Below, in pieces: positions 1 to 40,700 of a stretch of DNA of 64,000 bases. The notes beneath the pieces are model-generated. The model searched no databases. It saw only the letters and a list, made by a program, of their open reading frames with translations, and was not told where the DNA came from. Position numbers and translations under genes: made by a program. This DNA comes from Oculina patagonica. Lineage: Eukaryota. The number at the start of each line of letters is the position of its first letter. The stretch's first letter is position 1. The stretch covers positions 8,990,001 to 9,054,000 of the forward strand of contig NC_135760.1 in NCBI RefSeq assembly GCF_052425735.1. Direction: 5' to 3'.

Positions 1-3000
1 AGAACCTATACTTACTGGCGCCCTCATTCCCTGTCAAACAGAAATGGGTCACCTCTTTGGAGTTTGTGCTGGATGAGATAAAGAAGAAAAACAACAATGG
101 CGAGGATCAGGTATGTAAATTGCAGTGGAACGAACGTGTCAGTTAAAGAAGGAATTAGTTAGATTTCGTATTTAACATAACCACATCAAACCCCGTGTCA
201 CGAATTTTAGCCAAATTTAGACATAAGAAAAAAAGGCCATCAAATTAAGTGAAAAAATAAATGAAATATGAAAGTAGCCACCTAACGCAGTGAAAGAACA
301 TTTCAGTAACACAGCAAATACAAAAGAAAGTACGGATGGAGAAAAAACGAAGAAGATTAAAACGTATTGCTTTGTGGGTTTTTGAAAAACTGTTAGGCTG
401 GAGCTTTTGCAAAGTCAATTTCGTTTGTTTGTAACTTTTGAGTATAACTCCCGGGAGACATATTTGTTTGTAATGGAAGTAATTTCTTCGCTAACAGAAA
501 GTTTCATAGCCAGTATTTTGCAAAACTTAATGACTAAACTCAGCCGTAATACAATCCCTTTAAGTCGGAAGGTGGTCGCTACTCATCAACAGCGAGACAA
601 CAACCTCGTTTCCCAGGGGTAGAGAGAAGGACAACTTCCCAACGTGCCGTTCCTTTAACCTTTAACTGTTGTTGTTGCTTTGCAGAAACTAATGGGCAAC
701 GTGTTACTGCATTTAGAGGAAGGCGAGCGCCTTGATATTAATTGTACCAAGCTACTAAATGACGAGGTAAGAAGCACAAAAAAATATACATACAGTCGAG
801 ACAACATGGATGTCTCAGCGGTTAGAATATTGAACTGTTTTCTTGCAGGCGTAGAAACAAGTGCTATTTTCGGCTAATTTTCGTAGAGATACCCGACAAA
901 TGTCCGATTTTTATTGTCCAATCAGAAAAGAGCACGAGTACCCCGAACGGTTTACGACATCTTGTCGTCAAGTGATACACCATATGACGTGGTCTCGTGT
1001 AAAAAACAGTCTTGATCAGGCACGGTCAGTTTATATGTAAAAAAAAAAGTAAATTGTCTTTGCTTGACAGTTCTACCTACCTATTTTTATTCAATTTCAA
1101 AGCATTTTTTCTTTTCTTTTGCCTTGTAGTTGGTTCTCCTGGGTGCCGAAGAGGGTCTGTATTCCTTGTCTCTTGAGAGCCCAGGCAAAAACTCGCCACG
1201 CGCCATTCCTGGAATAGAGAGGGCCTTTCAAATCGATATCCTTAGTGATCTGAACCAGGCTATCATGATTGCAGGTACAGATATAAATGTCGCACAATAA
1301 CAGTAGTTTCCTTGGAGCCATTGTTTTAGATTTGATTCTTTTAATGGCAGCCTGGCCGAGTGGTTAGGGACAGACCATTATTTTCTTTGGGGGAGGGGAA
1401 GTTATCACCAACTGCTCAAGATCGATGGTGCAAAGAAAAAAAATCTTGCAGAGGGTTTAGAAAAATTCTTACTCAGAAAAATTCCCGCACCCCCGTCAAA
1501 AAGATAATGGTCCGTCCTTTTGGGCGCTGGACTTGAGTTACGGAGGTTTTCGGGTTTAAATCCTGTTCTGACACTAGATGGCTTTGTTCCCGGTAGTCCG
1601 GAGCTTAAGGTCATTGCCCTGAAATAGAACTGAACACAATTTTTTAACCAAACTTCGCCTATTGGTTTATTACTTTAAGGGAACTTAAATTTTGAAATAA
1701 AAAAGGGGGGTCACCAGATCCGTTTAAGAGCAGGAAGACCTTGTATCTTCCATATAATGCCTTTAAAATTCCTCTGCGAGTACTAGCAAAGTACACGTTT
1801 TTAGCGATAATTTATTTTTTAAACACAAGAATTGATCTGTTTTCATTTTACAGAAAGAACTTGATCGCTACACCCAAAATATGAGAAAAAATCGATAGGT
1901 CACCAGACTCGTTTACGAGAAAGCGACAATTTACTTCTCTCGCGGACTAAGCCACATAGAAAAAAGCCGTTTATGTTTATGTGCGCGCGCTCGCGCGCGC
2001 TTATTACGCGTAAAATTCTGCGCAGTAAGGATGCGCAATGCAATACAGGGCAATGACCTTAACTTCTCGACACGCTTTGGTGTTCCGCATGCCGGTTATC
2101 CATGTTTAACTGTTATTTAATTTACAATATTCGATTCAGCGTTTGTTTACATTGGACCTGAAAAGCCCCATAAGGGGAGTTGTCAACCTCGTTTCCAGGG
2201 TCTCTCTCTCCCCGCCCCGGGAACGAGGTTTGGGAGTTGTCAATCAAGTTTCTTTCTCCTTTACTTTGTTGAGCTTATGTCTTTTGAGAGTTTTACAGGC
2301 TTTGCCATTATGGAAGGTCAAGCTGAAAAACTTTTTTTCTTGTACTGCATACTAAGACAGAAGCAAACGAAACCAGTGAAGAGATGCTGGACTTGTAAAA
2401 CTTCCTTACATTTCCTTGTTTTCTTTCCTTGAAGGCAAAGACCGCCAGTTGTGCAGTGTGGATCTTAAACAGCTTACGACCCGAGCGCGTCAAGTAAACT
2501 CTGCTGTACCACTCACTACACTGAGCTCACAGGGAATAGAAAAGATCACAAACTGCCATTTGTTCGCTGTCGGACAGGTTTGTTCATGATTAATAATGGT
2601 AATAGAACTGAGTGGAATCCGATTCGGTCTGTAATCATACCAGTGATTAACAAAATCGGACGACCCCGTAGCGAGAGTCCGATTTGTTTAATCACGAGTA
2701 TGACAACAGACAGAATTCGACCACACGAAGTCCTATTACCAATTCATCATAAGTATAACAAAATTCGATGAAAAAATTTACACAAGCAAATCCTGTTGAG
2801 GATTTATCCTGACCTCACTTTGACAAAAAAGCAATTTTTAAAACTGAAGGATTTAAGAATATCAAGGCGTATTCAGTCACAATAAGGAACCAAATAAAGA
2901 GTGCGCGCAAAAAGCGAACTTTGTTATTTGATACCTTGTAATCGGACATCTGGTTTATTGGACACTTAAACTGCACGCGCTCCAATTTGGTGAAAAAAGA

Positions 3001-5128
3001 ACGTGCTAAGAACCAATGAGATTCGAGAATTTTGTTATAGTTATGATTAAGAGTGCAATAAAAACCGTTTTACCGTAAATCACGTTGGATTTACTGTTGT
3101 TTTTTCATCTTCTTCAGTGTGAGGATAATTACTACGTTTGCGCTGCGACACCTAACAGCATCCTGTTATTGCGATACAACGCCAGCATTGGGACGTTTTG
3201 TACCCGCAAGGTAAGGAAGCACAACTTTCTGTGAGCGGATTAAACTACAAGTATTCTTTCGCTAATATTTTTTGTACACATTGCGTGCCTGTTTCTATTC
3301 GCAGGAGATCGAGACCAGCGAGCCATGTAACTGCATTCATTTTAGCAAGAGTCACGTGATCTATGGAACTGGCAAGTTCTACAGCTTGGATATCAAGCAA
3401 CACACTGTTAAAGGTTTGAAAATAAAATGATAATATGTAAATAAATAAATGATACATTTCCACGAAATTACAGAGTGATCGAGCATTTATTAATTCTTTT
3501 CAATTTTTTTCAGAATTTCTTGACTCCAAGGACCCTTCATTAGCGTTCGCAGTGTATGGAGCCTCGCAGCTGAACATCTTTCCTATTGCAGTGCTGGATG
3601 TAACCACTGCAGGCTCAAACAAGGAAGAGCTGCTACTTTGTTTTAACGGTAAGCTATCAACAGCATACCGCTGAACATTGCTGACGGGCCAAACAAGTTT
3701 TGATGTTTTGTAAAATATCTTGCGTGACCGAAAAAAGAAAAAAAAGGTCGGATAGAATTGGTTGTTGGAGTACCACGCCATTGCGCGAAAAGTTACAGTA
3801 AGTAGACATCCGTTGAAATTGTACCGCACAACAGCCTCAGGAATTCAGAAGTGAACACCCCGGCGGTGTTATTCAGACGGCATTGCGCGCAATTTTCCAT
3901 GAACTGTCCAGGTATTGAAGCAAACCACCTTTCCGTTAATTTAGCTTTTTACGCGAAATTCAACTTCTCGTAGTTATTTCCAAAACGGACCCCATCAATA
4001 CCATTTATAACCTAACACGATGCTGAAGAAAATTTGAATAAATCTTTTGTGTTTTTAGAGTTTGGCGTGTTTGTGAACAGCTCTGGTTGTCACAGCAGGA
4101 AAAAGCCTTTGATGTGGTGCAGACTGCCGCTTGCTTTTGGTGAGTTCCACCGGTCCCATGAGCAAGATTTCTGCTTTTCCTAATTATTCCTAAGTTCTGC
4201 GTAAACATACTACACCGTTACTTATAATATTTTTTTTTTTGTTCCAACAGCTTACAGTGAGCCATTCCTGTTTGTCACTCATTTTAATTCCATTGACGTC
4301 TGTGAAATTCCACCAAGTACTGCTGAAAATCCCAGGTAAAAAAAATATTTTTTTCCCCTCTATTCCCGCGCCGGCGATTCTCAAGCCTGCAATGCAGGCG
4401 TATTTTAGCGCCGAGAGCACATTTCGATTGGGTGAGCGCCATCTTGGATTCGAACTCGGGAGAGGCTTGGGGAGAGATTTAAAAAGCGTCCTGGGGAGTA
4501 GGAGTAAGGCTGAATGAAGAGTGTGGCGTCGTTCTCTCGTCTCAACCCTCTACGTTTGCGTCTCCAAGACCAAATACGCGAAAAAAATTTTTTATCCAAC
4601 GCTCGCCCATAAAAAAAAGCCTGCATTGCATCCGGCAGAGGGGGATGCCGGATGTATTTTTTTGTCTCCAGGTAAATGGGCTATAACCATTTGGGGCTTG
4701 TAAGCGGGGGGAGGGGCTTATAACCGGAATTTTACGGTATTCCCTTCGCTCTCTCACGTCTTTTAACTCTTTCTTACAGCCGCTATGTGCACAAGTTTCT
4801 GGAAATTCAAAATCCACGGGTCCTTAGTCCAGCGGTATCTCCCGGTGCGGTCTATCTCGCTTCCACGTTACACGAGCAAGTTGAGATGCTGTGTTTCCAA
4901 GGCAACGCAGCTCCCGCCAGTGTCTTCCAACCCGAAGACGACGACGATAGCATGTCGATCATTTCCGAGCTGTCACGACTGTCGAGCCCGAGCCGCCGAT
5001 CGTCGATGTTGGCTCGTTCCCCTTCGTGGAGTCCCGGTTCTGCCCGAGTGAAGTCGTTGAAAGGCATTTGTCCTAAGAAGAGCAGCTCATTTCGCACAGT
5101 TAAACCTCTGACAGAAGAAAACATGTGA
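1..5128 (+). CDS. CIT: Citron Rho-interacting kinase, 3' part (end of PH domain + CNH domain), 10 exons, 5'-partial
   Basis: GT-AG exons <1-110, 686-766, 1130-1274, 2435-2577, 3118-3210, 3305-3413, 3514-3648, 4059-4139, 4251-4335, 4780-5128 join in frame. They give [120 protein letters not shown]. This is collinear with the vertebrate citron PH-CNH region ([49 protein letters not shown]). Confidence 0.93.
1367..1518. mobile_element. MITE, PIF/Harbinger-like
   Basis: Imperfect TIR GGGACAGACCATTA / TAATGGTCCGTCC with TTA on the left flank. Confidence 0.5.
1609..2058. mobile_element. Non-autonomous TTAA-target DNA transposon (Kolobok-like, GG...CC ends)
   Basis: TIR GGTCATTGCCCTG / CAGGGCAATGACC with TTAA on both sides (1605-1608, 2059-2062). 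Confidence 0.75.
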
Positions 5129-31700: not shown

Positions 31701-34700
31701 TTTCCTGCCGAGATAACACAGAAAAAATATTCACATTCTGCGCTTTGTGATTTCTCATCCGATCAAAAGAAAAACCAAAGCCAATCGTGACCCGCTCGCG
31801 CACTCTTTTCCGCCTTTCGCGAGGCTACATGTATCTGCTTCGAGTTTAAATTGGTTCACTTAAGTAATTGTGACCTTTGTGATTGATCAGAGTGACTACT
31901 TTGGGTCTGATTTTACGACACTCAATTAAAAACTGCTCTATAGAATAGAGTTCAAAAGTACTCACCCTTTGTTTTTCGAAATCCATTCTTACTGCATTTC
32001 TGTTTACAATGATGCTTCCTGCGTTACCTGAGAAAAAAACATAATGAGAACAGTCGTCAGATAACCTTTTTTCAACTGGACATTCCCTGCGCAACCAGTC
32101 TATGCCAATATCACATTGGCTGGTGCATGACACTCCAACTGATCGAATTATCTTTATCGCAATAAAATTATTACGTCTATTTTGTTTTCATTGATGTAAA
32201 ATTAATTAAGTGCAACTTACCAACGATAGTAGCAAACATGAAAACACCGGTTAAGTAGCAAGCGATAGTATAAACATATCTGAAACAACAGGCAAGAAAA
32301 ACAAAATTACAGTTAAACACAGAGAGTTGTACATGTTTTGTAAAGCAGTAGTTTTTTTGCTAAATTTGTGTTACAAAGTTCTAAGGCAAGATCGGACTGT
32401 TGTAAAACCAAAAGTGACAACAACATCGACACATTTGTGTGTCAAAAATATTTCGCGTTTACTTTAGTTTTACATTACTTCGCTTAATGATTGGTTTAAA
32501 AAGCTCGCGCTACTTTCTCAACCCATCAGAAGTAAAACCAAAACCGATCGTGACTCGCTCGCGTATGTTTTCCCGCGCCAGTTTTCGCGCAGGCTACATG
32601 TATATGTTACGAGTTTTGATTGGTTTACTGCATTGTCTGCGCTCTTTGTGATTGGCCAGAGTGATTACTTTGGTTTTAATTCTAGGACTCTCCAGTAAAA
32701 ACTGCTCTATTCTGTTGTGTTATAACCTAGGGGACTGGGGAGGAGCACATGGTCTAGCTATCCAACATGGCGTAGTCGACATCGAGTTGTGCGGCCATTT
32801 TTCAATCTGCTCGCCGATCGCTATCGATCATAGACGTTAGAAGCTTCATTTCTTCGCTCTAGGGGCGACGTTTGTCTCAACTATAAAGGAAATGCCACCC
32901 AAGCCAATTCCAAAACCCTCCGAGGGGGCCAGTGCGAGTCCAACAACAACATCTGGACCAAACCTTCAATTTATTTCTTCTGAAATTGCACGAGTGCCGA
33001 AGCTTGATATTGCAACCTCTACTCCAGACGGATTCCAAATTTGGAAGCAGCGATGGAACTCTGCAGTGACAATTACAGCTTTCTCCGATCTTCCTAGAGA
33101 AACCCAACAAGCTCTATTTACAAACGTCCTGAGCGATGACACCGTTAAAAGAATGAACATCTTAGGGCTACAAGATGTCAATGCTATCATTGAGTCTTTC
33201 CAAACCCAGGTATGTGGAAGTACAAGTATCTTTGTTCATGAATACGAGTTTCACAACAGGTCCCAAGGGACAAATGAGTCTTTTGAAGAGTTTTACATTG
33301 ATTTACAGTCCCTGTTGAATAAGTGCCAGTATGAAGATTGTTGCAAGACTGAAACTAGAATGTCATGTAAAGAGCGTGTTCTTCTTGCAAGATTAGTGGC
33401 TGGCATAAGGTCCAATGAGGTTCGTAAGAGTCTTCTGTGTATTAAAGATCTAACCCTCGAGAAAGCTGTTCAACATGTTCAAGTTGATGAAGCCACTTCA
33501 TTTCAAGCAAACCAATTTTCTTCTCAAATAAACAAAACTGGTGCTTCTGCCTACAGAAAAGGCAAATCAAGCAATAACTCTGACAACAGCAATGCACCTC
33601 CTTCTGACATGTCAGAAGACAGCCCTAGGAAATGCAAATTCTGTATGAGGTTCCATGTATTCCGAAAGGAATTATGCCCTGCAAAAGATTCTATTTGCAA
33701 AGCCTGCAACACCAAAGGCCACTGGGCCAAATCCCTCATGTGTCCCAATAATTCTAAGACTGGTCCAAAGCGACCCAGCGAGGATAGGAAATCAGATGCT
33801 CATGCAGCACAGCCTGGCTCCTCTGGAAATCCTTCTCTTCAATTGATTTCAGCTGATGGAAAGTCTCAAATAAGCCACACTGCATCTGTTAAAACTATCA
33901 ACCTTTCTGCTATTCCTAGTGTTGGAACTCACTGCTATGCTGACTTTGTTATTGGCAATCACAACTGGATTCAGCAGTGCATGGTTGATCCTGGTGCCAA
34001 TATAAACTGTGTTGGTTATGACTGGATCACTCGTTTTGAAACTCCTGAATGGAACTATAACCTAGAGTGTGGTTCCGTTAAAGCTGCTGGTGGTCACAAC
34101 CTTAAAGTTGAAGCACGCGTACTTCTGAAGATTTCCTGGCCCCCAGAAGACCCAGTTCTCTCAGCTAGCCAATGGTTCCACATTATCCACGGTGAGGATG
34201 GAGTTGTCCTTGGCACTCCTGCTTGTCGAGCTCTTGGTGTCATAGATGACCAGTGGCCATTGTCTACTTTGGAAGAAAAAGTCAACCCCTCTTCTTCAAC
34301 TGTAAAAACACTGCAGGCAGACCCTGCCCAGTCTTTACCTGGCAGCACATTACAGGACCAACTACACTCTGACGCCAACAATTTTGAGTCTCTACCTCCG
34401 CCTCCAGATGATGACCTGTTGTCTCACTTGAACTGGATGCACCATGCAGCAGATGACGTACAAGTAAATGTGATTGGAACCTCTTCAGAGCCAACCATCG
34501 CCGAGAGTTCAGAAGACTCTGATTTTTCATCCCTCTTACACGATTATGAAGACATCTTTGATGAGACTTTTCTTCCTGCCATGTCAGGTGAACCATTTAA
34601 GATCAATCTCAAGCCCAATGCTACACCCTATGCTCAGTTAAAGGCAAGAAAAGTTCCAATCCCTTACTTGGAGCAACTGAAGAAACAACTTCAGGAGATG

Positions 34701-37700
34701 GAGCAACTTGGAGTAATCTCACCATGCGAAGAACCCAGCCCATGGTGTCACCCAATCGTAATAGCCCCGAAGAAGGGCACTGATGAACTCAGAATTTGCA
34801 TTGATTTCACTCGCTTGAATAAATTTATTCAGCGTGAATATCATCTCAGTAACTCTCCTTTTGAAGCTGTAACCAGCATTCCTCAAGAGGAGCTTGCATA
34901 CTTCTGCAAGTTTGATGCTCGCCATGGTTACTGGCAAGTTCCACTTCATGCTGAATCACGTCCTCTCACCTGCTTTATTACACCATTTGGTCGATTTGTG
35001 TGTAATCGAGCTGCATTTGGAATTAACAGCATCTCTGAATGGTACAACCGCCGCATGGACAAGGTCGTTGCTGGCCTGGAAGGAGTTCGCAAAATCGTTG
35101 ATGACATTCTGATCTATGCACCAAGTCTGTCTATTCTGAAGATGCGCACCTGTGCCTTCCTTGATCACTGTCGTCAGCATGGTGTCACGCTCAAACAAAC
35201 AAAGTCGCAGCTTGCCGTTACAGAAGTCGAGTTTGGTGGATTTCGTCTGACGAAAACTGGCATCCAGACCAGTCCTGACCTACTAAAATCTATCAGGGAT
35301 TTTCCTCGCCCACAAAACCTCACCGATCTCCGCTCATGGTTTGGGTTAGTAAACCAGCTTGGCAATTTCTCCAAGGAACTCACTGCAATTATGGCACCCT
35401 TCCGCCCTCTTCTTGCAAAGGATACAGTGTTCCAATGGTTGCCTGAACATGAACATGCCTTCCTGGAAGCGAAATCTCGCCTGAGTTCCACTCCTGTGCT
35501 AACATACTTCGCTGTTAACCAACCAACTATTCTTGCTACTGATGCATCTCGTCTCAAGGGACTGGGTTTCGTCCTCCTACAATTGGTAGATGATGTCTGG
35601 AAACCAATACAAGCAGGTTCACGCTTCTTGACTCCTGCAGAAAGCCGCTATGCTATGATAGAACTTGAGGCTCTTGCTGCCTGCTGGGCAATGAAGAAAT
35701 GCAACATGTTTGTTCAGGGTTTACCACACTTCACCCTTCTTACTGACCATCAGCCTTTCATCCCAATACTGAATTCTAAGGGAATTGCAGATGTCGAGAA
35801 TCCCAGACTCCAGCGACTTATGATGAAGATGCTGCCATATTCGTTCACTGCAGAATGGGTGAAAGGCAAGGATCATTTGGCTGCAGACGCTCTTTCTCGT
35901 TTCCCAGTGGATGAGCCATCACTCGATGATGAGCTATGTAACATTCATGCTGAAGCAGCTGTAAAGATCCAATTTGCTGATAAGTCAACTGAAGACCTAC
36001 AACTTCATGAAGTTTTTCAAGCTCAGCAGACAGACCCTCAGATTTCTCAAGTTACAGAGTACATCAATTGTGGATGGCCTAAATCACTAGAAGAAGTAGC
36101 AACAGTTGCAAAACCTTTCTGGCCTATCCGTCACAACCTTTACCTCGTTGCACCAACCACTGGCAGATCTATTCTTGTAATGAATGGACGAACTGTTATT
36201 CCATCCTCTCTACAAAAGAAGATGCTTTTGGTTCTGCATGAAGGGCATCAAGGTGTTGATAAAACTCGCCGCCGTGCCCGTGCTTCCATCTATTGGCCTG
36301 GCATAGATCGCGAAATCGAAGACATGGTGAAACGATGCCACCAGTGTCTGACACATCTTCCAGTAAATTCTAAAGAACCACTGGAGCAGCCACCAATACC
36401 AACAAGACCTTGGGAGAAGCTAGGTGTTGACCTATTTAGCCTCGATGGAAATGAGTACCTCATTACCACCGACTATTTCTCCTTTTTCACTGAAGTGCAT
36501 GATCTAAAGAAGAACAGTAAGGCGCCATTAGTGATCAAGGAACTGAAGAAGACTTTTTCGCGCTTTGGAACACCTGTGGAAGTAGTCTCTGACGGTGGCT
36601 CTCAGTTCACGTGTAAGGCCTTTGAAGATTTCTCACAAGAGTGGGGTTTCCAACACACTGTGTCATCACCTACACATGCGCAGTCAAATGGCAAAGCTGA
36701 GGCAGCCGTAAAAAATGTCAAAAAGCTACTCAAGAAGTGTGGATCAATGAATCATGATGAATTTTGGAAAGGTATGTTAGCAATCCGCAACACTCCACTT
36801 GCCTGTGGGAAGAGTCCAGCTGAGTTGTTATTTGGCAGAGCACTGCATGACTTTCTTCCTCGAGTCCCAAACCCTAAGGAAGAATTTCTAACTCCCACCA
36901 CAAGGAAGAAAATCCTACATGCCAAGAGTAAGGAGAAACTCTACTATGATAAACATACCAAAGTACTACCTCCTCTAGAACTAGGATCCCGTGTCGCAAT
37001 TCGCTCTCGCAATGACACTGACTGGTCCCTTCTTGGGACTGTTATTGAAATTAGACCAAACCGTACCTTTGCTGTCGAAACTGACCGTGGTTCGGTGCTC
37101 ATCCGCAACAGAAAGTACCTGAAGCTCACAATCTGACAATGTGCCTTTTCTACATGTTTGCGTTCCTTTTTTATTATCTCCTAAAGAGGGAGGGAGATGT
37201 TGTACGTTCTCTGATCTCCTCCTGTCGGGGGAGGGAGATGTTGTGTTATAACCTAGGGGACTGGGGAGGAGCACATGGTCTAGCTATCCAACATATTCCG
37301 ATTTTGCGTTTGCGTTCAAGTTTTTTTTAACAAATATGTCAATACGCGTGAACATCGTTGAAGCGAGGGCAATCTGCCGTCTTGGTTATAGACTAATAAA
37401 AGACATCAAATACGCCTGCGTATTCTTACGTTCCTTGGGCTTGCTTTAGACCGTGATACAGGTTTCACTTTCAGGAGAATTCGATTTACAGCCTTTACAA
37501 TACAGAAACGGTTTAATTATAAGTGAAGCGTAAGAAAACAATTCGGAAAATGTTAATTGCCTTGAAAAGGAATCTTTCATAATCCTTATTCGAACAAATG
37601 CCAGTGTTTATATATAGCTTTTAAATAAAAGTGTGGGAGTCCACCAATTTTCAGTTAAGTAGTTTTGACAAAGATAAAAATGTCTGAACAAAACACATAT

Positions 37701-40700
37701 TCGTAAATCATATAAAAGCCTAAAATCCAGTGAGGCAGTTTTAACTTAACTTAATCGCTATCTTTTTTAAAAAAAAATGTTACTCAGAAATATTGTATGA
37801 ATCGGTTGCCCACAGTGTTTCAGTTGTTAGCTTTGACTAAATCCATATGTCAAGAGTTCATATTTAGTTATTTACTCAAGAGCCAGCTTTCGGACAGATT
37901 ATTGTCATATCGCTTATCATGCGTACATGTTTAGGGCTTGTAAATGAACTTTCAGATGGAATCGGGGGCTTGGGTTAATAAAACAACAAACGATGTCAAT
38001 TTGTTTTCTACAACCTGGATGTGTTCGTTAAGGTAAATAGACGCGCATAAGATATTACAAGAATAGTATAGAAAATTTGTATTTTTAATAAAAAAAATGT
38101 CCTTGAGAACGCTTATATTGATTAACTTTCTTTAATCGACTGAGTTAATGCAAAGTGACTTCAACAAGAGCTTTTCAAAATTAACCCTGTCTAAATAAAA
38201 CCCTCCTGCTTGCTCACGCCTAAACTTCAACGTGTTAAAAAGCTGTTTAGCTTTAAACACGGTTTTAAGTTGTTTTTAGTTGCGTGCTGTCGTGTTTAGT
38301 GACATGAACATTTCCATAATGAGCTGATTGCTAGAGAATGCTTCCCGGTGTAAATTTGAATTTGTCACGAGAATTCTGGCTACCACCTGCGCCATTGTGA
38401 ATGCATATTGAATACCATTTTCATTAAAAAGGAGCTTGAATGTGTTTAAATTTAAAATTGCGAAAGGAAATTGATTGACAGTATCTTCCAAGATCTGCCA
38501 TGGCTGAAAATAAGCTTGGGCAAACATCAAATAAATTTATTCAGGGTACTTTCCAGCCCGAAATAACGACTTAAAAAAACGGTTTTTTTTCCTTGTTTTC
38601 CCCTAAAAACTAGCTCCAGAATAACGTTATATTACAAGCACTTGCTAGACTGAAGGCATAGAATATATTAAGTCAATCTTATCTGCAAGGAAAATGCTAG
38701 ATTAATATTAGAAAAGCGACTCCTTATGCTCAAGCAATATCAAGTGCCTCAAAGCAAAAGATGGTTGGAATATATTTCGTCCGTTGAACAAAAAAAAAAA
38801 AGGAAAACTGAGCGAACACTAGCTTTTAAAAATTGATATAAAAAACATCAATTTGTTAAGGCTACGTCGCGACATAAATCGACCACAAGCAAAGAAAACA
38901 AATGATTCTCGCAAGTCACGCCGAAATTTTCATTATTATAAGAATTAATTATTTTTTCAAAAAACCTTCCCGTCTTTTCGGAACCACAGTAGAAATGGAC
39001 AATTTTACACTAAGTTTAAGCGGTCTCTGGCTTGCCTGAATGTTATGGTGATTTTAAAGTGTTTTTTTAAAACGGGAACACGCGCTACTAACGATTCGAC
39101 TAAAAAAGTGTGTTTTTTTGGTTTCGAGTTTCCCCATGCGCTTTTCAAACTAATTGAGTTGCAGCTGCTATATTCCTTAGTGAGACCACATTTTTGTAAC
39201 TCCTTAAATGCTATTGCGGTAAACGAACGTCCCAGCAAGCGCTCATTTAAACCAGTTAACTTTTGACGGAAATGGGAGTTCGTTTGCGCGCTTTTTGCGG
39301 CTTACTGAAAAACAAAAAAAAATCGCATTTCGTTTGTTGTTTCAACTCTTTTAAGAGATTTGTTGTCGCTCATCAACACAAGTGTAAACGAATGGGCTTA
39401 AAATAAAATTCGGAGTCTACTGTGGAACAGTTTACTTTATTATTTTTGTCCGCCTCTTAAGAAACCAGTAAGCCTGAAAGTCTCTATAACCGTTGTTTGT
39501 GAATTTTTTTCAGACGCGGTTTATTTTACTTGATCTTTAAAAAAAAAATACGTATGTATTCTTCTAGCCCTGACAGATGCAAATTAAAATTGACTTCGTA
39601 TATTTAGCTAGCAGTCGAGTCGTCTTCACTGCTATATCTTCCGCTGCTTTTAAAAGCTCAACCCATGGCAGGCTAAGTCTGATAAGTTTCTTAAGGCTCA
39701 CCGCAACATGTGCTTAAATCCCTACGGGTTAAGGCCTTAATGCTAATCGAGGATATTAAAATTATGCAAAATTGAGTGCAAAATTCAACTTCGGCGGAAG
39801 AGAAACATAAATAAACTAAAAATAAAATTAGAGTAGCATGCATGTTCTCTGAAAACAGAAATCTGCACGACCGCGCGGGCGTTCACTGAAAATTTCTTAA
39901 AGCAAAGCTTAAGTTGCGTGGTCAGCTAAATTCACTCGACTCTCTTATTTCGTGATTATCACCTAGCTCTCACGCTAAGCACAGCAAACAAACAGACAGA
40001 CAGATGAATAAACCTGTTGTTTTTCACACAATGTTACAAAGAGCAAAATTTGAACAAAAAAAGACTTTTACTTACTCTAGATTTGAAGTCGGCGCTGGCA
40101 GATCTCCTATGGCTGTAAGAGTCAGGGTGGACCAGTAAAATGACTGGAGATATTGCTGATAGAGAGAGCCGTTTCCCTGATAAACCCATTCATTAGTTCC
40201 GAATCCCTCCGCTCTAGATATCATGTAATAAAAAGCAGCGTTCCAGTGTATAAGAAGAAACATTAGATGCATTAGAAAGAACACGCGTAAGAAAGTCGGA
40301 TAGTTTGCCTGTGACTCCATAACTGCTTTGATACGAAAGCTCTTGTAACCTTTCACAATACGGTTGACTCTTAGTAGCGGAAGCGGTCCAAAAGCGGCGT
40401 ACAAAATATCCGTTGGAATCAAAGACACCACGTCTGCAATAAACTCAACAGATCGTATATACCGCATGTATACTCGTTTCGTATCTGTTACTAGGATTCC
40501 TTCCTCTAGAAAGCCGGTGCGCGCGGCGATCACGATGTCCAATGCATAGATTGCATCGCAAAAATAGTCGAAGAGAAACCATACTATCTTCAGAAAGCCA
40601 CTCTGGGCTTCGGGGAAAGCTATCCTCGTGATTAATGCCCACAAGTTATAGCGAATGGCGAAAACAAGGACATAAAACCACACACAAATGGGCAGTCCAT

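Follow-up and report, generated by a model that had tools for sequence, protein, structure and literature searches.

Introduction

Ty3 of yeast, the Gag-Pol of which is the closest solved relative of the element described here, has LTRs of ~340 bp, two reading frames joined by a frameshift and a tRNA-iMet primer, and targets Pol III genes. The LTR of Bombyx Mag is 77 bp in length, and the default lower LTR limit of both LTRharvest and LTR_FINDER is 100 bp. Elements of the Mag lineage, including the Steamer-like elements, are ~4.5–5 kb long and have a single gag-pol ORF, 5-bp target-site duplications (TSDs), TG...CA termini and short LTRs, with a mean LTR length of 174 bp in Mag C and 213 bp in Mag A (PMC3601003), and 153–219 bp in Steamer (PMC8905726). 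The primer binding site (PBS) of the lineage is to tRNA-Ser or tRNA-Leu (PMC3286476), and the LTRs of Mag A start with the motif TGTTRKR (PMC3601003). In the Ty1/copia superfamily, the autonomous FRetro64 from a rice relative has LTRs of 76/90 bp, and its non-autonomous partner FRetro129 (SMART) has an 85-bp LTR (PMC3281118).

Here, we describe an element with 55-bp LTRs at positions 32713–37293 (4581 bp, + strand) of the window, the whole 64,000-nucleotide stretch of Oculina patagonica DNA that was analysed. It very probably represents an autonomous Ty3/gypsy (Metaviridae-type) stony-coral family that is active now or was so very recently, and that belongs to a compact, single-ORF 'K02A2.6-like' (probably Mag-like) short-LTR clade in which its own LTR has been reduced to 55 bp. 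The general features of the Mag lineage given above are shared by the element, and its LTRs, which read TGTTGTG...CAACA, fit the Mag A motif at their 5' end; however, they are three to four times shorter and lack AATAAA, the zinc knuckles are unusually spaced, the protease carries D-P-G, and neither the PBS nor the LTR ends match those of Steamer itself. Judging from the single ORF, the tRNA-Ser PBS, the TGTTRKR start and the short-LTR clade, the element probably belongs to the Mag lineage; the Mag-type features (a single ORF, a tRNA-Ser PBS and short TGTTRKR...YAACA LTRs) are all present, and are typical of but not exclusive to this lineage. The name 'K02A2.6-like' borne by its relatives supports the placement indirectly.

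With Ty3 (intasome 7q5b, RT 4ol8) the element shares the domain order and the 5-bp TSD. FRetro64 and FRetro129 likewise combine a short LTR with the lack of a poly(A) signal, and have a TATA box (PMC3281118) where the present LTR has a TATA-like one, whereas the two plant elements belong to the copia superfamily and another kingdom and have LTRs that are 20–35 bp longer, FRetro129 also being non-coding. No LTR of 60 bp or less, and no autonomous element with LTRs as short as these, was found in a search of the published literature, in which the shortest were 76–90 bp. The LTR length is below any that we found described, whereas the replication route is the ordinary, tRNA-primed one. Terminal repeats of 55 bp are enough for an autonomous LTR retrotransposon to remain fully mobile. 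As this length lies well below the 100-bp default limit, annotation of invertebrate genomes, those of cnidarians included, would overlook such families or label them wrongly.

Overall structure of the element

All of the features described below lie on the + strand. The 5' LTR (32713–32767; TGTTG...CAACA) and the 3' LTR (37239–37293) are identical at 55 of 55 positions and are flanked by the TSD TATTC, which occupies 32708–32712 on the left and 37294–37298 on the right. The PBS (TGGCGTAGTCGACATCG; 32768–32784) lies directly 3' of the 5' LTR and opens a 124-nt leader (32768–32891) comprising the PBS and the 5' UTR. The single gag-pol ORF of 1414 residues (32892–37136) makes up 92.7% of the element and is followed by a T-rich trailer (37137–37238), so that just 102 nt separate the stop codon from the 3' LTR. 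The polypurine tract (PPT; GGGGGAGGGAGA; 37227–37238) abuts the 3' LTR. Within the LTR, a TATA-like TTATAA at positions 8–13 (32720–32725), a candidate core promoter, aligns with a TTATA block at the 5' ends of sister LTRs, and a second block (GGGGACTGGGGAGGAGCACATG; 32730–32751), a candidate start-site region, is common to a 95-bp sister LTR (alignment A1). Both the LTR and the 102-nt trailer lack AATAAA, ATTAAA and any other recognizable polyadenylation hexamer, and a search of window positions 32000–38000 against Rfam at gathering thresholds gave no match. Direct reading agrees in all details with a preceding sequence-only reading of this locus, including the uninterrupted 1414-residue ORF, the TSD, the PBS, the PPT, the identical LTR pair, the 124-bp leader and a TTATAA at LTR positions 8–13 without AATAAA.

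The PPT is duplicated upstream together with the first six LTR nucleotides (AAAGAGGGAGGGAGA followed by TGTTGT; 37183–37203; repeat D2), and this duplicate is a possible second plus-strand primer. A true or ancestral LTR starting from this upstream copy would measure 96 bp, close to the 95 bp of a sister, but this possibility was rejected, if weakly: the 5' ends of the sister LTRs line up with that of the present LTR (TGTTGTGTTATA), the 41-nt upstream segment fails to align and no copy has a 96-bp 5' LTR.

Gag-pol coding region

The Pfam domains in the ORF occur in the order RVT_1, RT_RNaseH, Integrase_H2C2 and rve. These correspond to the reverse transcriptase (34767–35249; also matched by Ty3 RT), RNase H (35436–35840) and the integrase with its H2C2 zinc domain and catalytic core (36198–36674; also matched by the Ty3 intasome 7q5b). 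The protease active-site region, VDPGA (33984–33998), has D-P-G in place of D-S/T-G; it aligns with DSGA/DTGS of relatives, and a 75% identical sister likewise has DPG (alignment A2). With the protease upstream of the reverse transcriptase, the order is the PR-RT-RNaseH-IN of Ty3/gypsy, and in a comparison with the PDB the closest solved relative was Ty3 Gag-Pol (E = 2e-50 across RT-RH-IN), which bears out the description of the locus as an intact Ty3/gypsy element. The twin zinc knuckles that had also been proposed are two CCHC-like motifs in Gag (33633–33743) of non-canonical spacing (CX2CX3HX6C at residues 248–262 and CX2CX4HX6C at residues 269–284); neither was matched by Pfam zf-CCHC. No chromodomain, the mark of chromoviruses, was matched by Pfam at the integrase C-terminus at E <= 0.01, and no envelope ORF, the mark of errantiviruses, is present, gag-pol being the only sense ORF of at least 100 residues.

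Copies in the genome

The genome contains at least 14 full-length copies on eight contigs, every one of which is 4581 bp in length and lies in different flanking sequence. In all 14, both LTRs are 55 bp and the ORF is free of stops, an agreement that chance could not give. Both flanks can be read in 13 copies, 12 of which have their own perfect 5-bp TSD; the remaining one is embedded in a (TACC)n microsatellite, which makes its TSD ambiguous, and the fourteenth copy reaches the end of its contig. A search with the LTR at up to one mismatch returned 36 genomic copies (32 identical and four with one mismatch), and the reversed-pattern control returned none. The full-length copies differ pairwise by 3–13 nt (mean 7.05, ~0.15%). 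They have 42 variable sites, mostly singletons, of which those in the ORF comprise 21 synonymous and 17 non-synonymous; against an expected synonymous fraction of 0.23–0.34, this excess has a p value of 1e-5 to 0.005, and purifying selection thus acts among the copies. The sequence-only reading had suggested a recently mobile element, and this is confirmed by the copies, which are near-identical, have identical LTR pairs and each lie in flanks of their own, with TSDs of their own. The findings that it had named as refuting did not turn up: the length of 55 bp recurs in all 14, and no copy or sister copy of the family has a longer LTR. The different flanks also contradict an origin of the copies by segmental duplication. 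A family with at least 14 open copies that hardly differ from one another is probably still generating insertional variation in the coral.

Contig C1 holds an old sister, ~80% identical, with a 5' repeat of 55 bp, a strongly diverged 3' repeat of 37 bp and a shared GGTGT duplication; its unequal repeats may reflect decay or an aberrant product. The same contig further holds a diverged short derivative of roughly 1.7 kb.

Relatives and the probable shortening of the LTR

The LTRs are 105–289 bp in relatives at ~43% protein identity and 94–122 bp in sisters at 73–80% RT-IN identity, the latter being P0001–P0004 (loci L061, L062, L068 and L069) from other public assemblies. The sisters share the architecture of the element, its tRNA-Ser PBS and its ...GGGAGA|TGT junction between PPT and LTR, which is kept in seven of the eight clade members examined (L065 has ...GGGGAGG|TGT), and the D-P-G protease is shared at least by P0002, the one sister aligned over the protease. 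The upstream PPT duplication, in contrast, is absent from the sisters in which it was checked (L061 and L062). The LTR of the L062 sister contains the same TTATA and GGGACT...CACATG blocks. When the 55-bp LTR is aligned with a 95-bp sister LTR, two internal blocks are missing, and it looks like the sister LTR from which these have been removed.

tRNA priming and the replication route

The tRNA-Ser(AGA) genes of the coral end in ...AATCCTGCCGACTACG. The first 11 nt of the PBS (32768–32778) pair without a mismatch with the tRNA-Ser(AGA) 3' end, and 13 of 14 positions do so overall, and the PBS of the sisters is complementary to tRNA-Ser over 15 nt. An aberrant mini-copy of 619 bp (G000:C8:14525240–14525858), with the TSD GTAAT, reads LTR followed by TGGCGTAGTCGGCAGGAT, that is, the 18 nt A59–A76 of mature tRNA-Ser(AGA) including CCA, and these tRNA-derived nucleotides stop beside tRNA position 58. 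The primer is tRNA-Ser(AGA), and the mini-copy is a textbook trace of plus-strand strong-stop DNA in which 18 nt of the tRNA were copied. From the structure of the element, its priming by tRNA-Ser(AGA) and the plus-strand strong-stop copying, it follows that the replication cycle is of the canonical retroviral type. As a genomic trace of tRNA-primed plus-strand strong-stop synthesis in a non-model animal, the mini-copy is a rarity. One breakpoint in it falls 1–2 nt past the upstream PPT duplicate.

Promoter and RNA ends

As a naturally occurring minimal case, the family lends itself to the question of what length of sequence the promoter, R, U5 and the integrase sites require. The 55 bp would retain both integrase-recognized ends, one TATA-like box (positions 8–13) and the conserved GGGACT...CACATG block. 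Transcription probably starts within this block, near LTR positions 35–39, which would leave ~20 nt or less for R and U5; the leader or gag, further downstream, probably supplies the enhancer functions, and the RNA 3' end is probably formed without a canonical AAUAAA, inside the LTR or just past it in the flank. The TTATAA lies 26–29 nt upstream of CACATG, and the corresponding spacing in the 95-bp sister is 31–33 nt from its second TATA. The TATA-like box is not retained in two degenerate relatives that this genome also contains.

Public sequencing runs were examined as Logan contigs. In run X1, a 55-nt contig is exactly the LTR, with a depth of 316 compared with 122.6 for the interior. In the RNA library X17, a ~98% identical contig runs from the PPT side through a single LTR of the same length to the PBS side, and in run X16 contigs end at LTR positions 30–31 (5') and 28 (3'); DNA carry-over is possible in the RNA libraries, and the X17 bridge could also be given by graph collapse of the two LTRs. 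If the X17 contig is pure RNA, a start upstream of about LTR position 26 is needed, which conflicts with a start at positions 35–39. The polyA-selected run X24 contains only fragments of a 95–99% identical relative.

It is possible, if somewhat unlikely, that a start site belonging to the element is used while its RNAs end at chance polyadenylation signals in the host flank, each copy giving a read-through transcript in which R is used internally in the first strand transfer. The absence of AATAAA and ATTAAA from the LTR and trailer is consistent with such a borrowed terminator, and two more distant relatives do carry a signal of their own near the LTR end (AATAAA 26–31 nt before the LTR end in L063 and an LTR ending with ATTAAA in L062); the same has been proposed for the plant element FRetro129 (PMC3281118), whose 85-bp LTR contains a TATA box and lacks a poly(A) signal. 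However, the signals for 3'-end formation in cnidarians may be less strict than AAUAAA, and the RNA-library contigs, albeit from other individuals or species, end within the LTR and not in the flanks.

A more radical and unlikely reading is that the LTR is essentially all R and att module with no working U3, so that transcription starts at or near its first bases from a promoter within the downstream leader or gag, in the manner of non-LTR retrotransposons, and the 55 bp serve just strand transfer and integrase recognition. The unbroken PPT-LTR-PBS contig of X17 would fit this arrangement, as would the 5'-most contig of X16, which starts upstream of the TATA-predicted start, and the TATA-like box that is gone from degenerate relatives; moreover, just ~35 bp are left for a U3 promoter, and a DPE-like AGTCG inside the PBS makes downstream core elements conceivable, if weakly so. 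On the other hand, DNA carry-over or collapse of the LTRs in the assembly graph explains these contigs equally well, the TTATA block, at its given distance from CACATG, looks like an ordinary TATA-Inr core promoter, and the downstream promoter is putative. If there were indeed no working U3, this would be an LTR retrotransposon with its promoter moved outside the LTR, and the minimum LTR for strand transfer and integration would be ~55 bp.

Origin of the family in the genome

A recent horizontal arrival would explain the star-like burst of copies with their singleton differences. It would also fit the 98–100% identity found in runs that carry the labels of several organisms, including the runs of four coded organisms (A–D), which contain 0.93–0.94 of the 31-mers of the element, and the ~98% identical variant carried by coral metatranscriptomes. 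Nevertheless, we consider it improbable: these four organisms may be closely related species of one genus, and the degraded ~80% identical sister with its 55-bp terminal repeat and the diverged short derivative are found in the same genome, from which we infer a long residence of the lineage there. Collapse of a longer LTR in the assembly, or a one-off deletion in the window copy, is of negligible probability given 14 uniform copies with independent flanks and TSDs, rearranged and deleted copies that also bear the 55-bp LTR, and the 55-nt LTR contig assembled from an independent run.

Solo LTRs were not found in the genome. C12:3824590–3824644 consists of the LTR and 6 nt of the PBS, without a TSD, and at C12:2886352 there is a 614-bp fragment of the 5' part of the element.

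Genomic copies of the element

The Ty3/gypsy retrotransposon at window positions 32713–37293 (4581 bp) belongs to an active, autonomous family with genuine 55-bp LTRs and ordinary tRNA-primed replication, and is an extreme form of a known type of element, not a new type. The interpretation offered by the sequence-only reading, an intact Ty3/gypsy element with 55-bp LTRs that may be recently mobile, is supported. In the window's own genome (529 Mb), 14 full-length copies were found on eight different contigs, every one exactly 4581 bp long, and all 14 carry a 55-bp LTR at both ends, unlike flanks and a stop-free ORF. A perfect target-site duplication (TSD) of its own, 5 bp long, surrounds 12 of the 13 copies whose flanks can be read on both sides; in the remaining one, inserted inside a (TACC)n microsatellite, the TSD is ambiguous, and the fourteenth copy stops at a contig end, so that one flank is unreadable. 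A pattern search for the LTR (up to one mismatch) returned 36 copies, compared with none for the reversed control. They belong to the 14 full-length copies, to two others of which one has an internal deletion and one carries an insertion, to a rearranged mini-copy and to two 5' fragments. No clean solo LTR was found among the 36 LTR copies in the genome, an absence compatible both with youth and with a repeat too short for efficient LTR–LTR recombination. An independent sequencing run (X1) yields the LTR by itself as a 55-nt contig, 2.6 times as deep as the element interior. One contig from an RNA library (X17), about 98% identical, continues from the PPT side across one LTR of unchanged length to reach the PBS. 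Assembly collapse is excluded by the 14 equal-length copies with their own flanks and TSDs and by the 55-nt contig in X1, and a one-off deletion by the 55-bp LTRs in all 14 copies with unlike flanks.

Some of these copies carry individual changes. The copy at G000:C186:2-6524 is split at element position 3775, where about 1.9 kb of other sequence, probably another mobile element, has inserted and 5 nt (3771–3775) are duplicated, and the copy at G000:C1:28215810-28220064 has an internal deletion of 315 bp (element 2536–2850). In the full-length copy at G000:C7:26697172-26701752 (L014), position 12 of the PBS is G where the family has A; G is the base that tRNA-Ser would specify, and may either record a correction of the PBS against the tRNA copy or be a simple mutation. 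A C36G change in both LTRs of two copies (L010 and L014) marks a subfamily.

Element structure

On direct reading of the window sequence, all of the features listed for the element are present. The LTRs (32713–32767 and 37239–37293), bounded by TGTTG...CAACA, are identical at 55 of 55 positions; the repeat finder gave 56 nt, the extra T opening both the PBS and the target duplication of the window copy, and the LTR is taken as 55 bp because the base after it varies among other copies. The TSD TATTC lies on either side of the element, the PBS (TGGCGTAGTCGACATCG) begins at the first base past the 5' LTR, the PPT (GGGGGAGGGAGA) runs to the last base ahead of the 3' LTR, and a single ORF of 1414 aa (32892–37136) covers 92.7% of the element. 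The LTR carries TTATAA at positions 8–13, and AATAAA and ATTAAA are absent from LTR and 102-nt trailer alike. The two zinc knuckles proposed earlier stand as two CCHC-like motifs, the spacing of which is unusual and is unrecognised by Pfam zf-CCHC.

Membership of Ty3/gypsy is confirmed by the Pfam domain order of the ORF (RVT_1, RT_RNaseH, Integrase_H2C2, rve) and by Ty3 Gag-Pol as the best solved relative (E = 2e-50); neither a chromodomain nor an env ORF occurs in the element. At the protease active site (window 33984–33998), D-P-G stands in place of the usual D-S/T-G. The sister P0002 (75% identical) has this form too, and DSG or DTG is found in relatives further away; since the family is clearly mobile, D-P-G is either functional or tolerated. 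A 26-nt direct repeat with 85% identity and 41 nt between its units (window 37178–37244) duplicates the PPT and the first 6 nt of the LTR, the upstream duplicate of PPT plus TGTTGT lying at 37183–37203. This duplicate occurs in the family, in an old sister and in a short derivative, and is absent in the other clade members examined.

Age and selection

The earlier description of the family as recently mobile holds, with near-identical copies, identical LTR pairs within each copy, and individual flanks and TSDs. The copies differ pairwise at 3–13 positions (mean 7.05, about 0.15%). Among 38 variable ORF sites, 21 are synonymous, against an expected fraction of 0.23 for uniform changes or 0.34 for transitions only (p = 1e-5 to 0.005). 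It follows that a large share of the variation dates from lineages in which working proteins were still required, and replication has probably proceeded from several source copies, not as a single burst followed by neutral decay.

tRNA priming and a 619-bp mini-copy

The coral genome contains a tRNA-Ser gene cluster with the anticodon loop CTAGAAA (anticodon AGA) and the 3' end ...AATCCTGCCGACTACG. The PBS of the element is perfectly complementary to this 3' end plus CCA over 11 nt and matches at 13 of 14 positions overall, and in the sister families the PBS matches over 15 nt. Direct evidence that the family uses tRNA-Ser is given by an aberrant mini-copy (L047, G000:C8:14525240-14525858) of 619 bp, with both 55-bp LTRs and its own TSD, GTAAT. 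Beside its 5' LTR, in place of the family PBS, lies TGGCGTAGTCGGCAGGAT, which is exactly complementary to the final 18 nt of mature tRNA-Ser(AGA), A59 to A76, including the non-encoded CCA. The tRNA-derived stretch ends next to tRNA position 58; the methylated A58 of the primer is where synthesis of plus-strand strong-stop DNA halts. The tag therefore shows the family to be primed by tRNA-Ser with a canonical strand-transfer cycle, and the LTR/PBS boundary to be as drawn.

In element sense, the mini-copy consists of the LTR, the 18-nt tRNA complement, element 2885–3336 in antisense orientation, element 4487–4526 and the second LTR. It is a fossil plus-strand strong-stop DNA joined through aberrant template switches, and as such a rare genomic record of strong-stop synthesis. 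Its second junction falls 1–2 nt past the plus-strand start expected at the upstream PPT duplicate (window 37183–37203); a random breakpoint would come that near about once in a thousand. This is suggestive, not proof, of the duplicate acting as a second plus-strand primer.

Relatives and shortening of the LTR

In a search of 5.8 billion proteins, the closest were four with 73–80% identity over RT–IN, followed by a gap to many at about 40–44%, some of them named 'K02A2.6-like' and from barnacle and flatworm genomes. The surrounding DNA was inspected for nine relatives. The five at about 43% identity have LTRs of 177, 159, 200, 105 and 289 bp with 5-bp TSDs, and the four sisters have LTRs of 122, 94–95, about 107–117 and 114 bp with a tRNA-Ser PBS. 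The junction ...GGGAGA/TGT is kept in all but one of the seven relatives examined for it, the exception (L065) being ...GGGGAGG/TGT. From these lengths, short LTRs are habitual in the clade and the present family is its extreme. In an alignment with the 95-bp sister LTR (L062), three blocks are retained in the 55-bp LTR (the TTATA-bearing 5' end, GGGACT...CACATG and the AACA end), and about 30 nt and about 13 nt between them are missing. Because more distant relatives have longer LTRs, the comparison makes deletion in the 55-bp lineage itself the likelier origin.

An old, internally deleted sister of 78–89% identity (G000:C1:48418705-48424915; L018, L021, L024 and L026; TSD GGTGT) has a 5' repeat of 55 bp and a 3' repeat of only 37 bp, strongly diverged from the 5' one. 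With 55 bp already seen at the 5' end of this degraded sister (about 80% identical and in the same genome), the short LTR is older than the present burst. A derivative of about 1.7 kb (G000:C1:3591493-3593213, its 3' part in L030) has a 3' LTR that is 98% identical over 54 nt and a trailer that is 85% identical; as gag-pol cannot fit, this relative is probably non-autonomous and mobilised in trans.

The element shows several features typical of Mag elements (a single ORF, a tRNA-Ser/Leu PBS, a TGTTRKR 5' end and short LTRs) and is probably Mag-like. The LTR of Bombyx Mag is about 77 bp. Mean LTR lengths in Mag clades are 174–213 bp (PMC3601003), and Steamer-like elements have LTRs of 153–219 bp (PMC8905726). 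The shortest documented here are those of a copia pair from a rice relative, the autonomous FRetro64 (76/90 bp) and FRetro129 (85 bp) (PMC3281118). No LTRs of 60 bp or below were found in the full-text literature, Repbase and Dfam lying outside the search, and 55 bp is likely, if unproven, to be the shortest known.

The family offers a natural minimal LTR for dissecting what the promoter, R, U5 and integrase sites need. LTR finders have a default minimum LTR of 100 bp, and annotation with such minima would overlook the family.

Proposed expression of the element

The TATA-like box lies 26–29 nt upstream of CA dinucleotides in the conserved CACATG, and in the 95-bp sister TATATAT lies 31–33 nt upstream of the CACATG block. 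In the simplest model, the core promoter would lie within the LTR and transcription would start near position 35–39, leaving about 20 nt or less for R plus U5. Under this model activating sequences would need to sit downstream, in the leader or gag, and such downstream sequences are known for Ty1 and copia. The 3' end of the RNA would be formed without a canonical hexamer, inside the LTR or in flanking DNA. A 3' end in flanking DNA has been proposed for FRetro129 (PMC3281118), and very short R regions are described for plant Sire (about 10 bp) and MMTV (11 bp) (PMC3601003). The element or close variants occur in contigs of three public RNA libraries from two studies, two of them random-primed coral metatranscriptomes and the third polyA-selected; DNA carry-over is possible in these contigs. 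A less likely but live alternative to the LTR promoter is an LTR consisting almost wholly of R, with an internal promoter in the element: the X17 contig, if pure RNA, needs a transcript start upstream of about LTR position 26, but DNA carry-over could equally explain the contig.

Repeat beside the insertion

Adjacent to the insertion on its upstream side (window 32643–32678) lies a motif, about 35 nt long, whose summed contig depth in X1 is about 25,000, compared with about 120 for the element. Many different contigs continue from it with unlike sequence on either side, and the motif probably forms the core of a short repeat or MITE of very high copy number.
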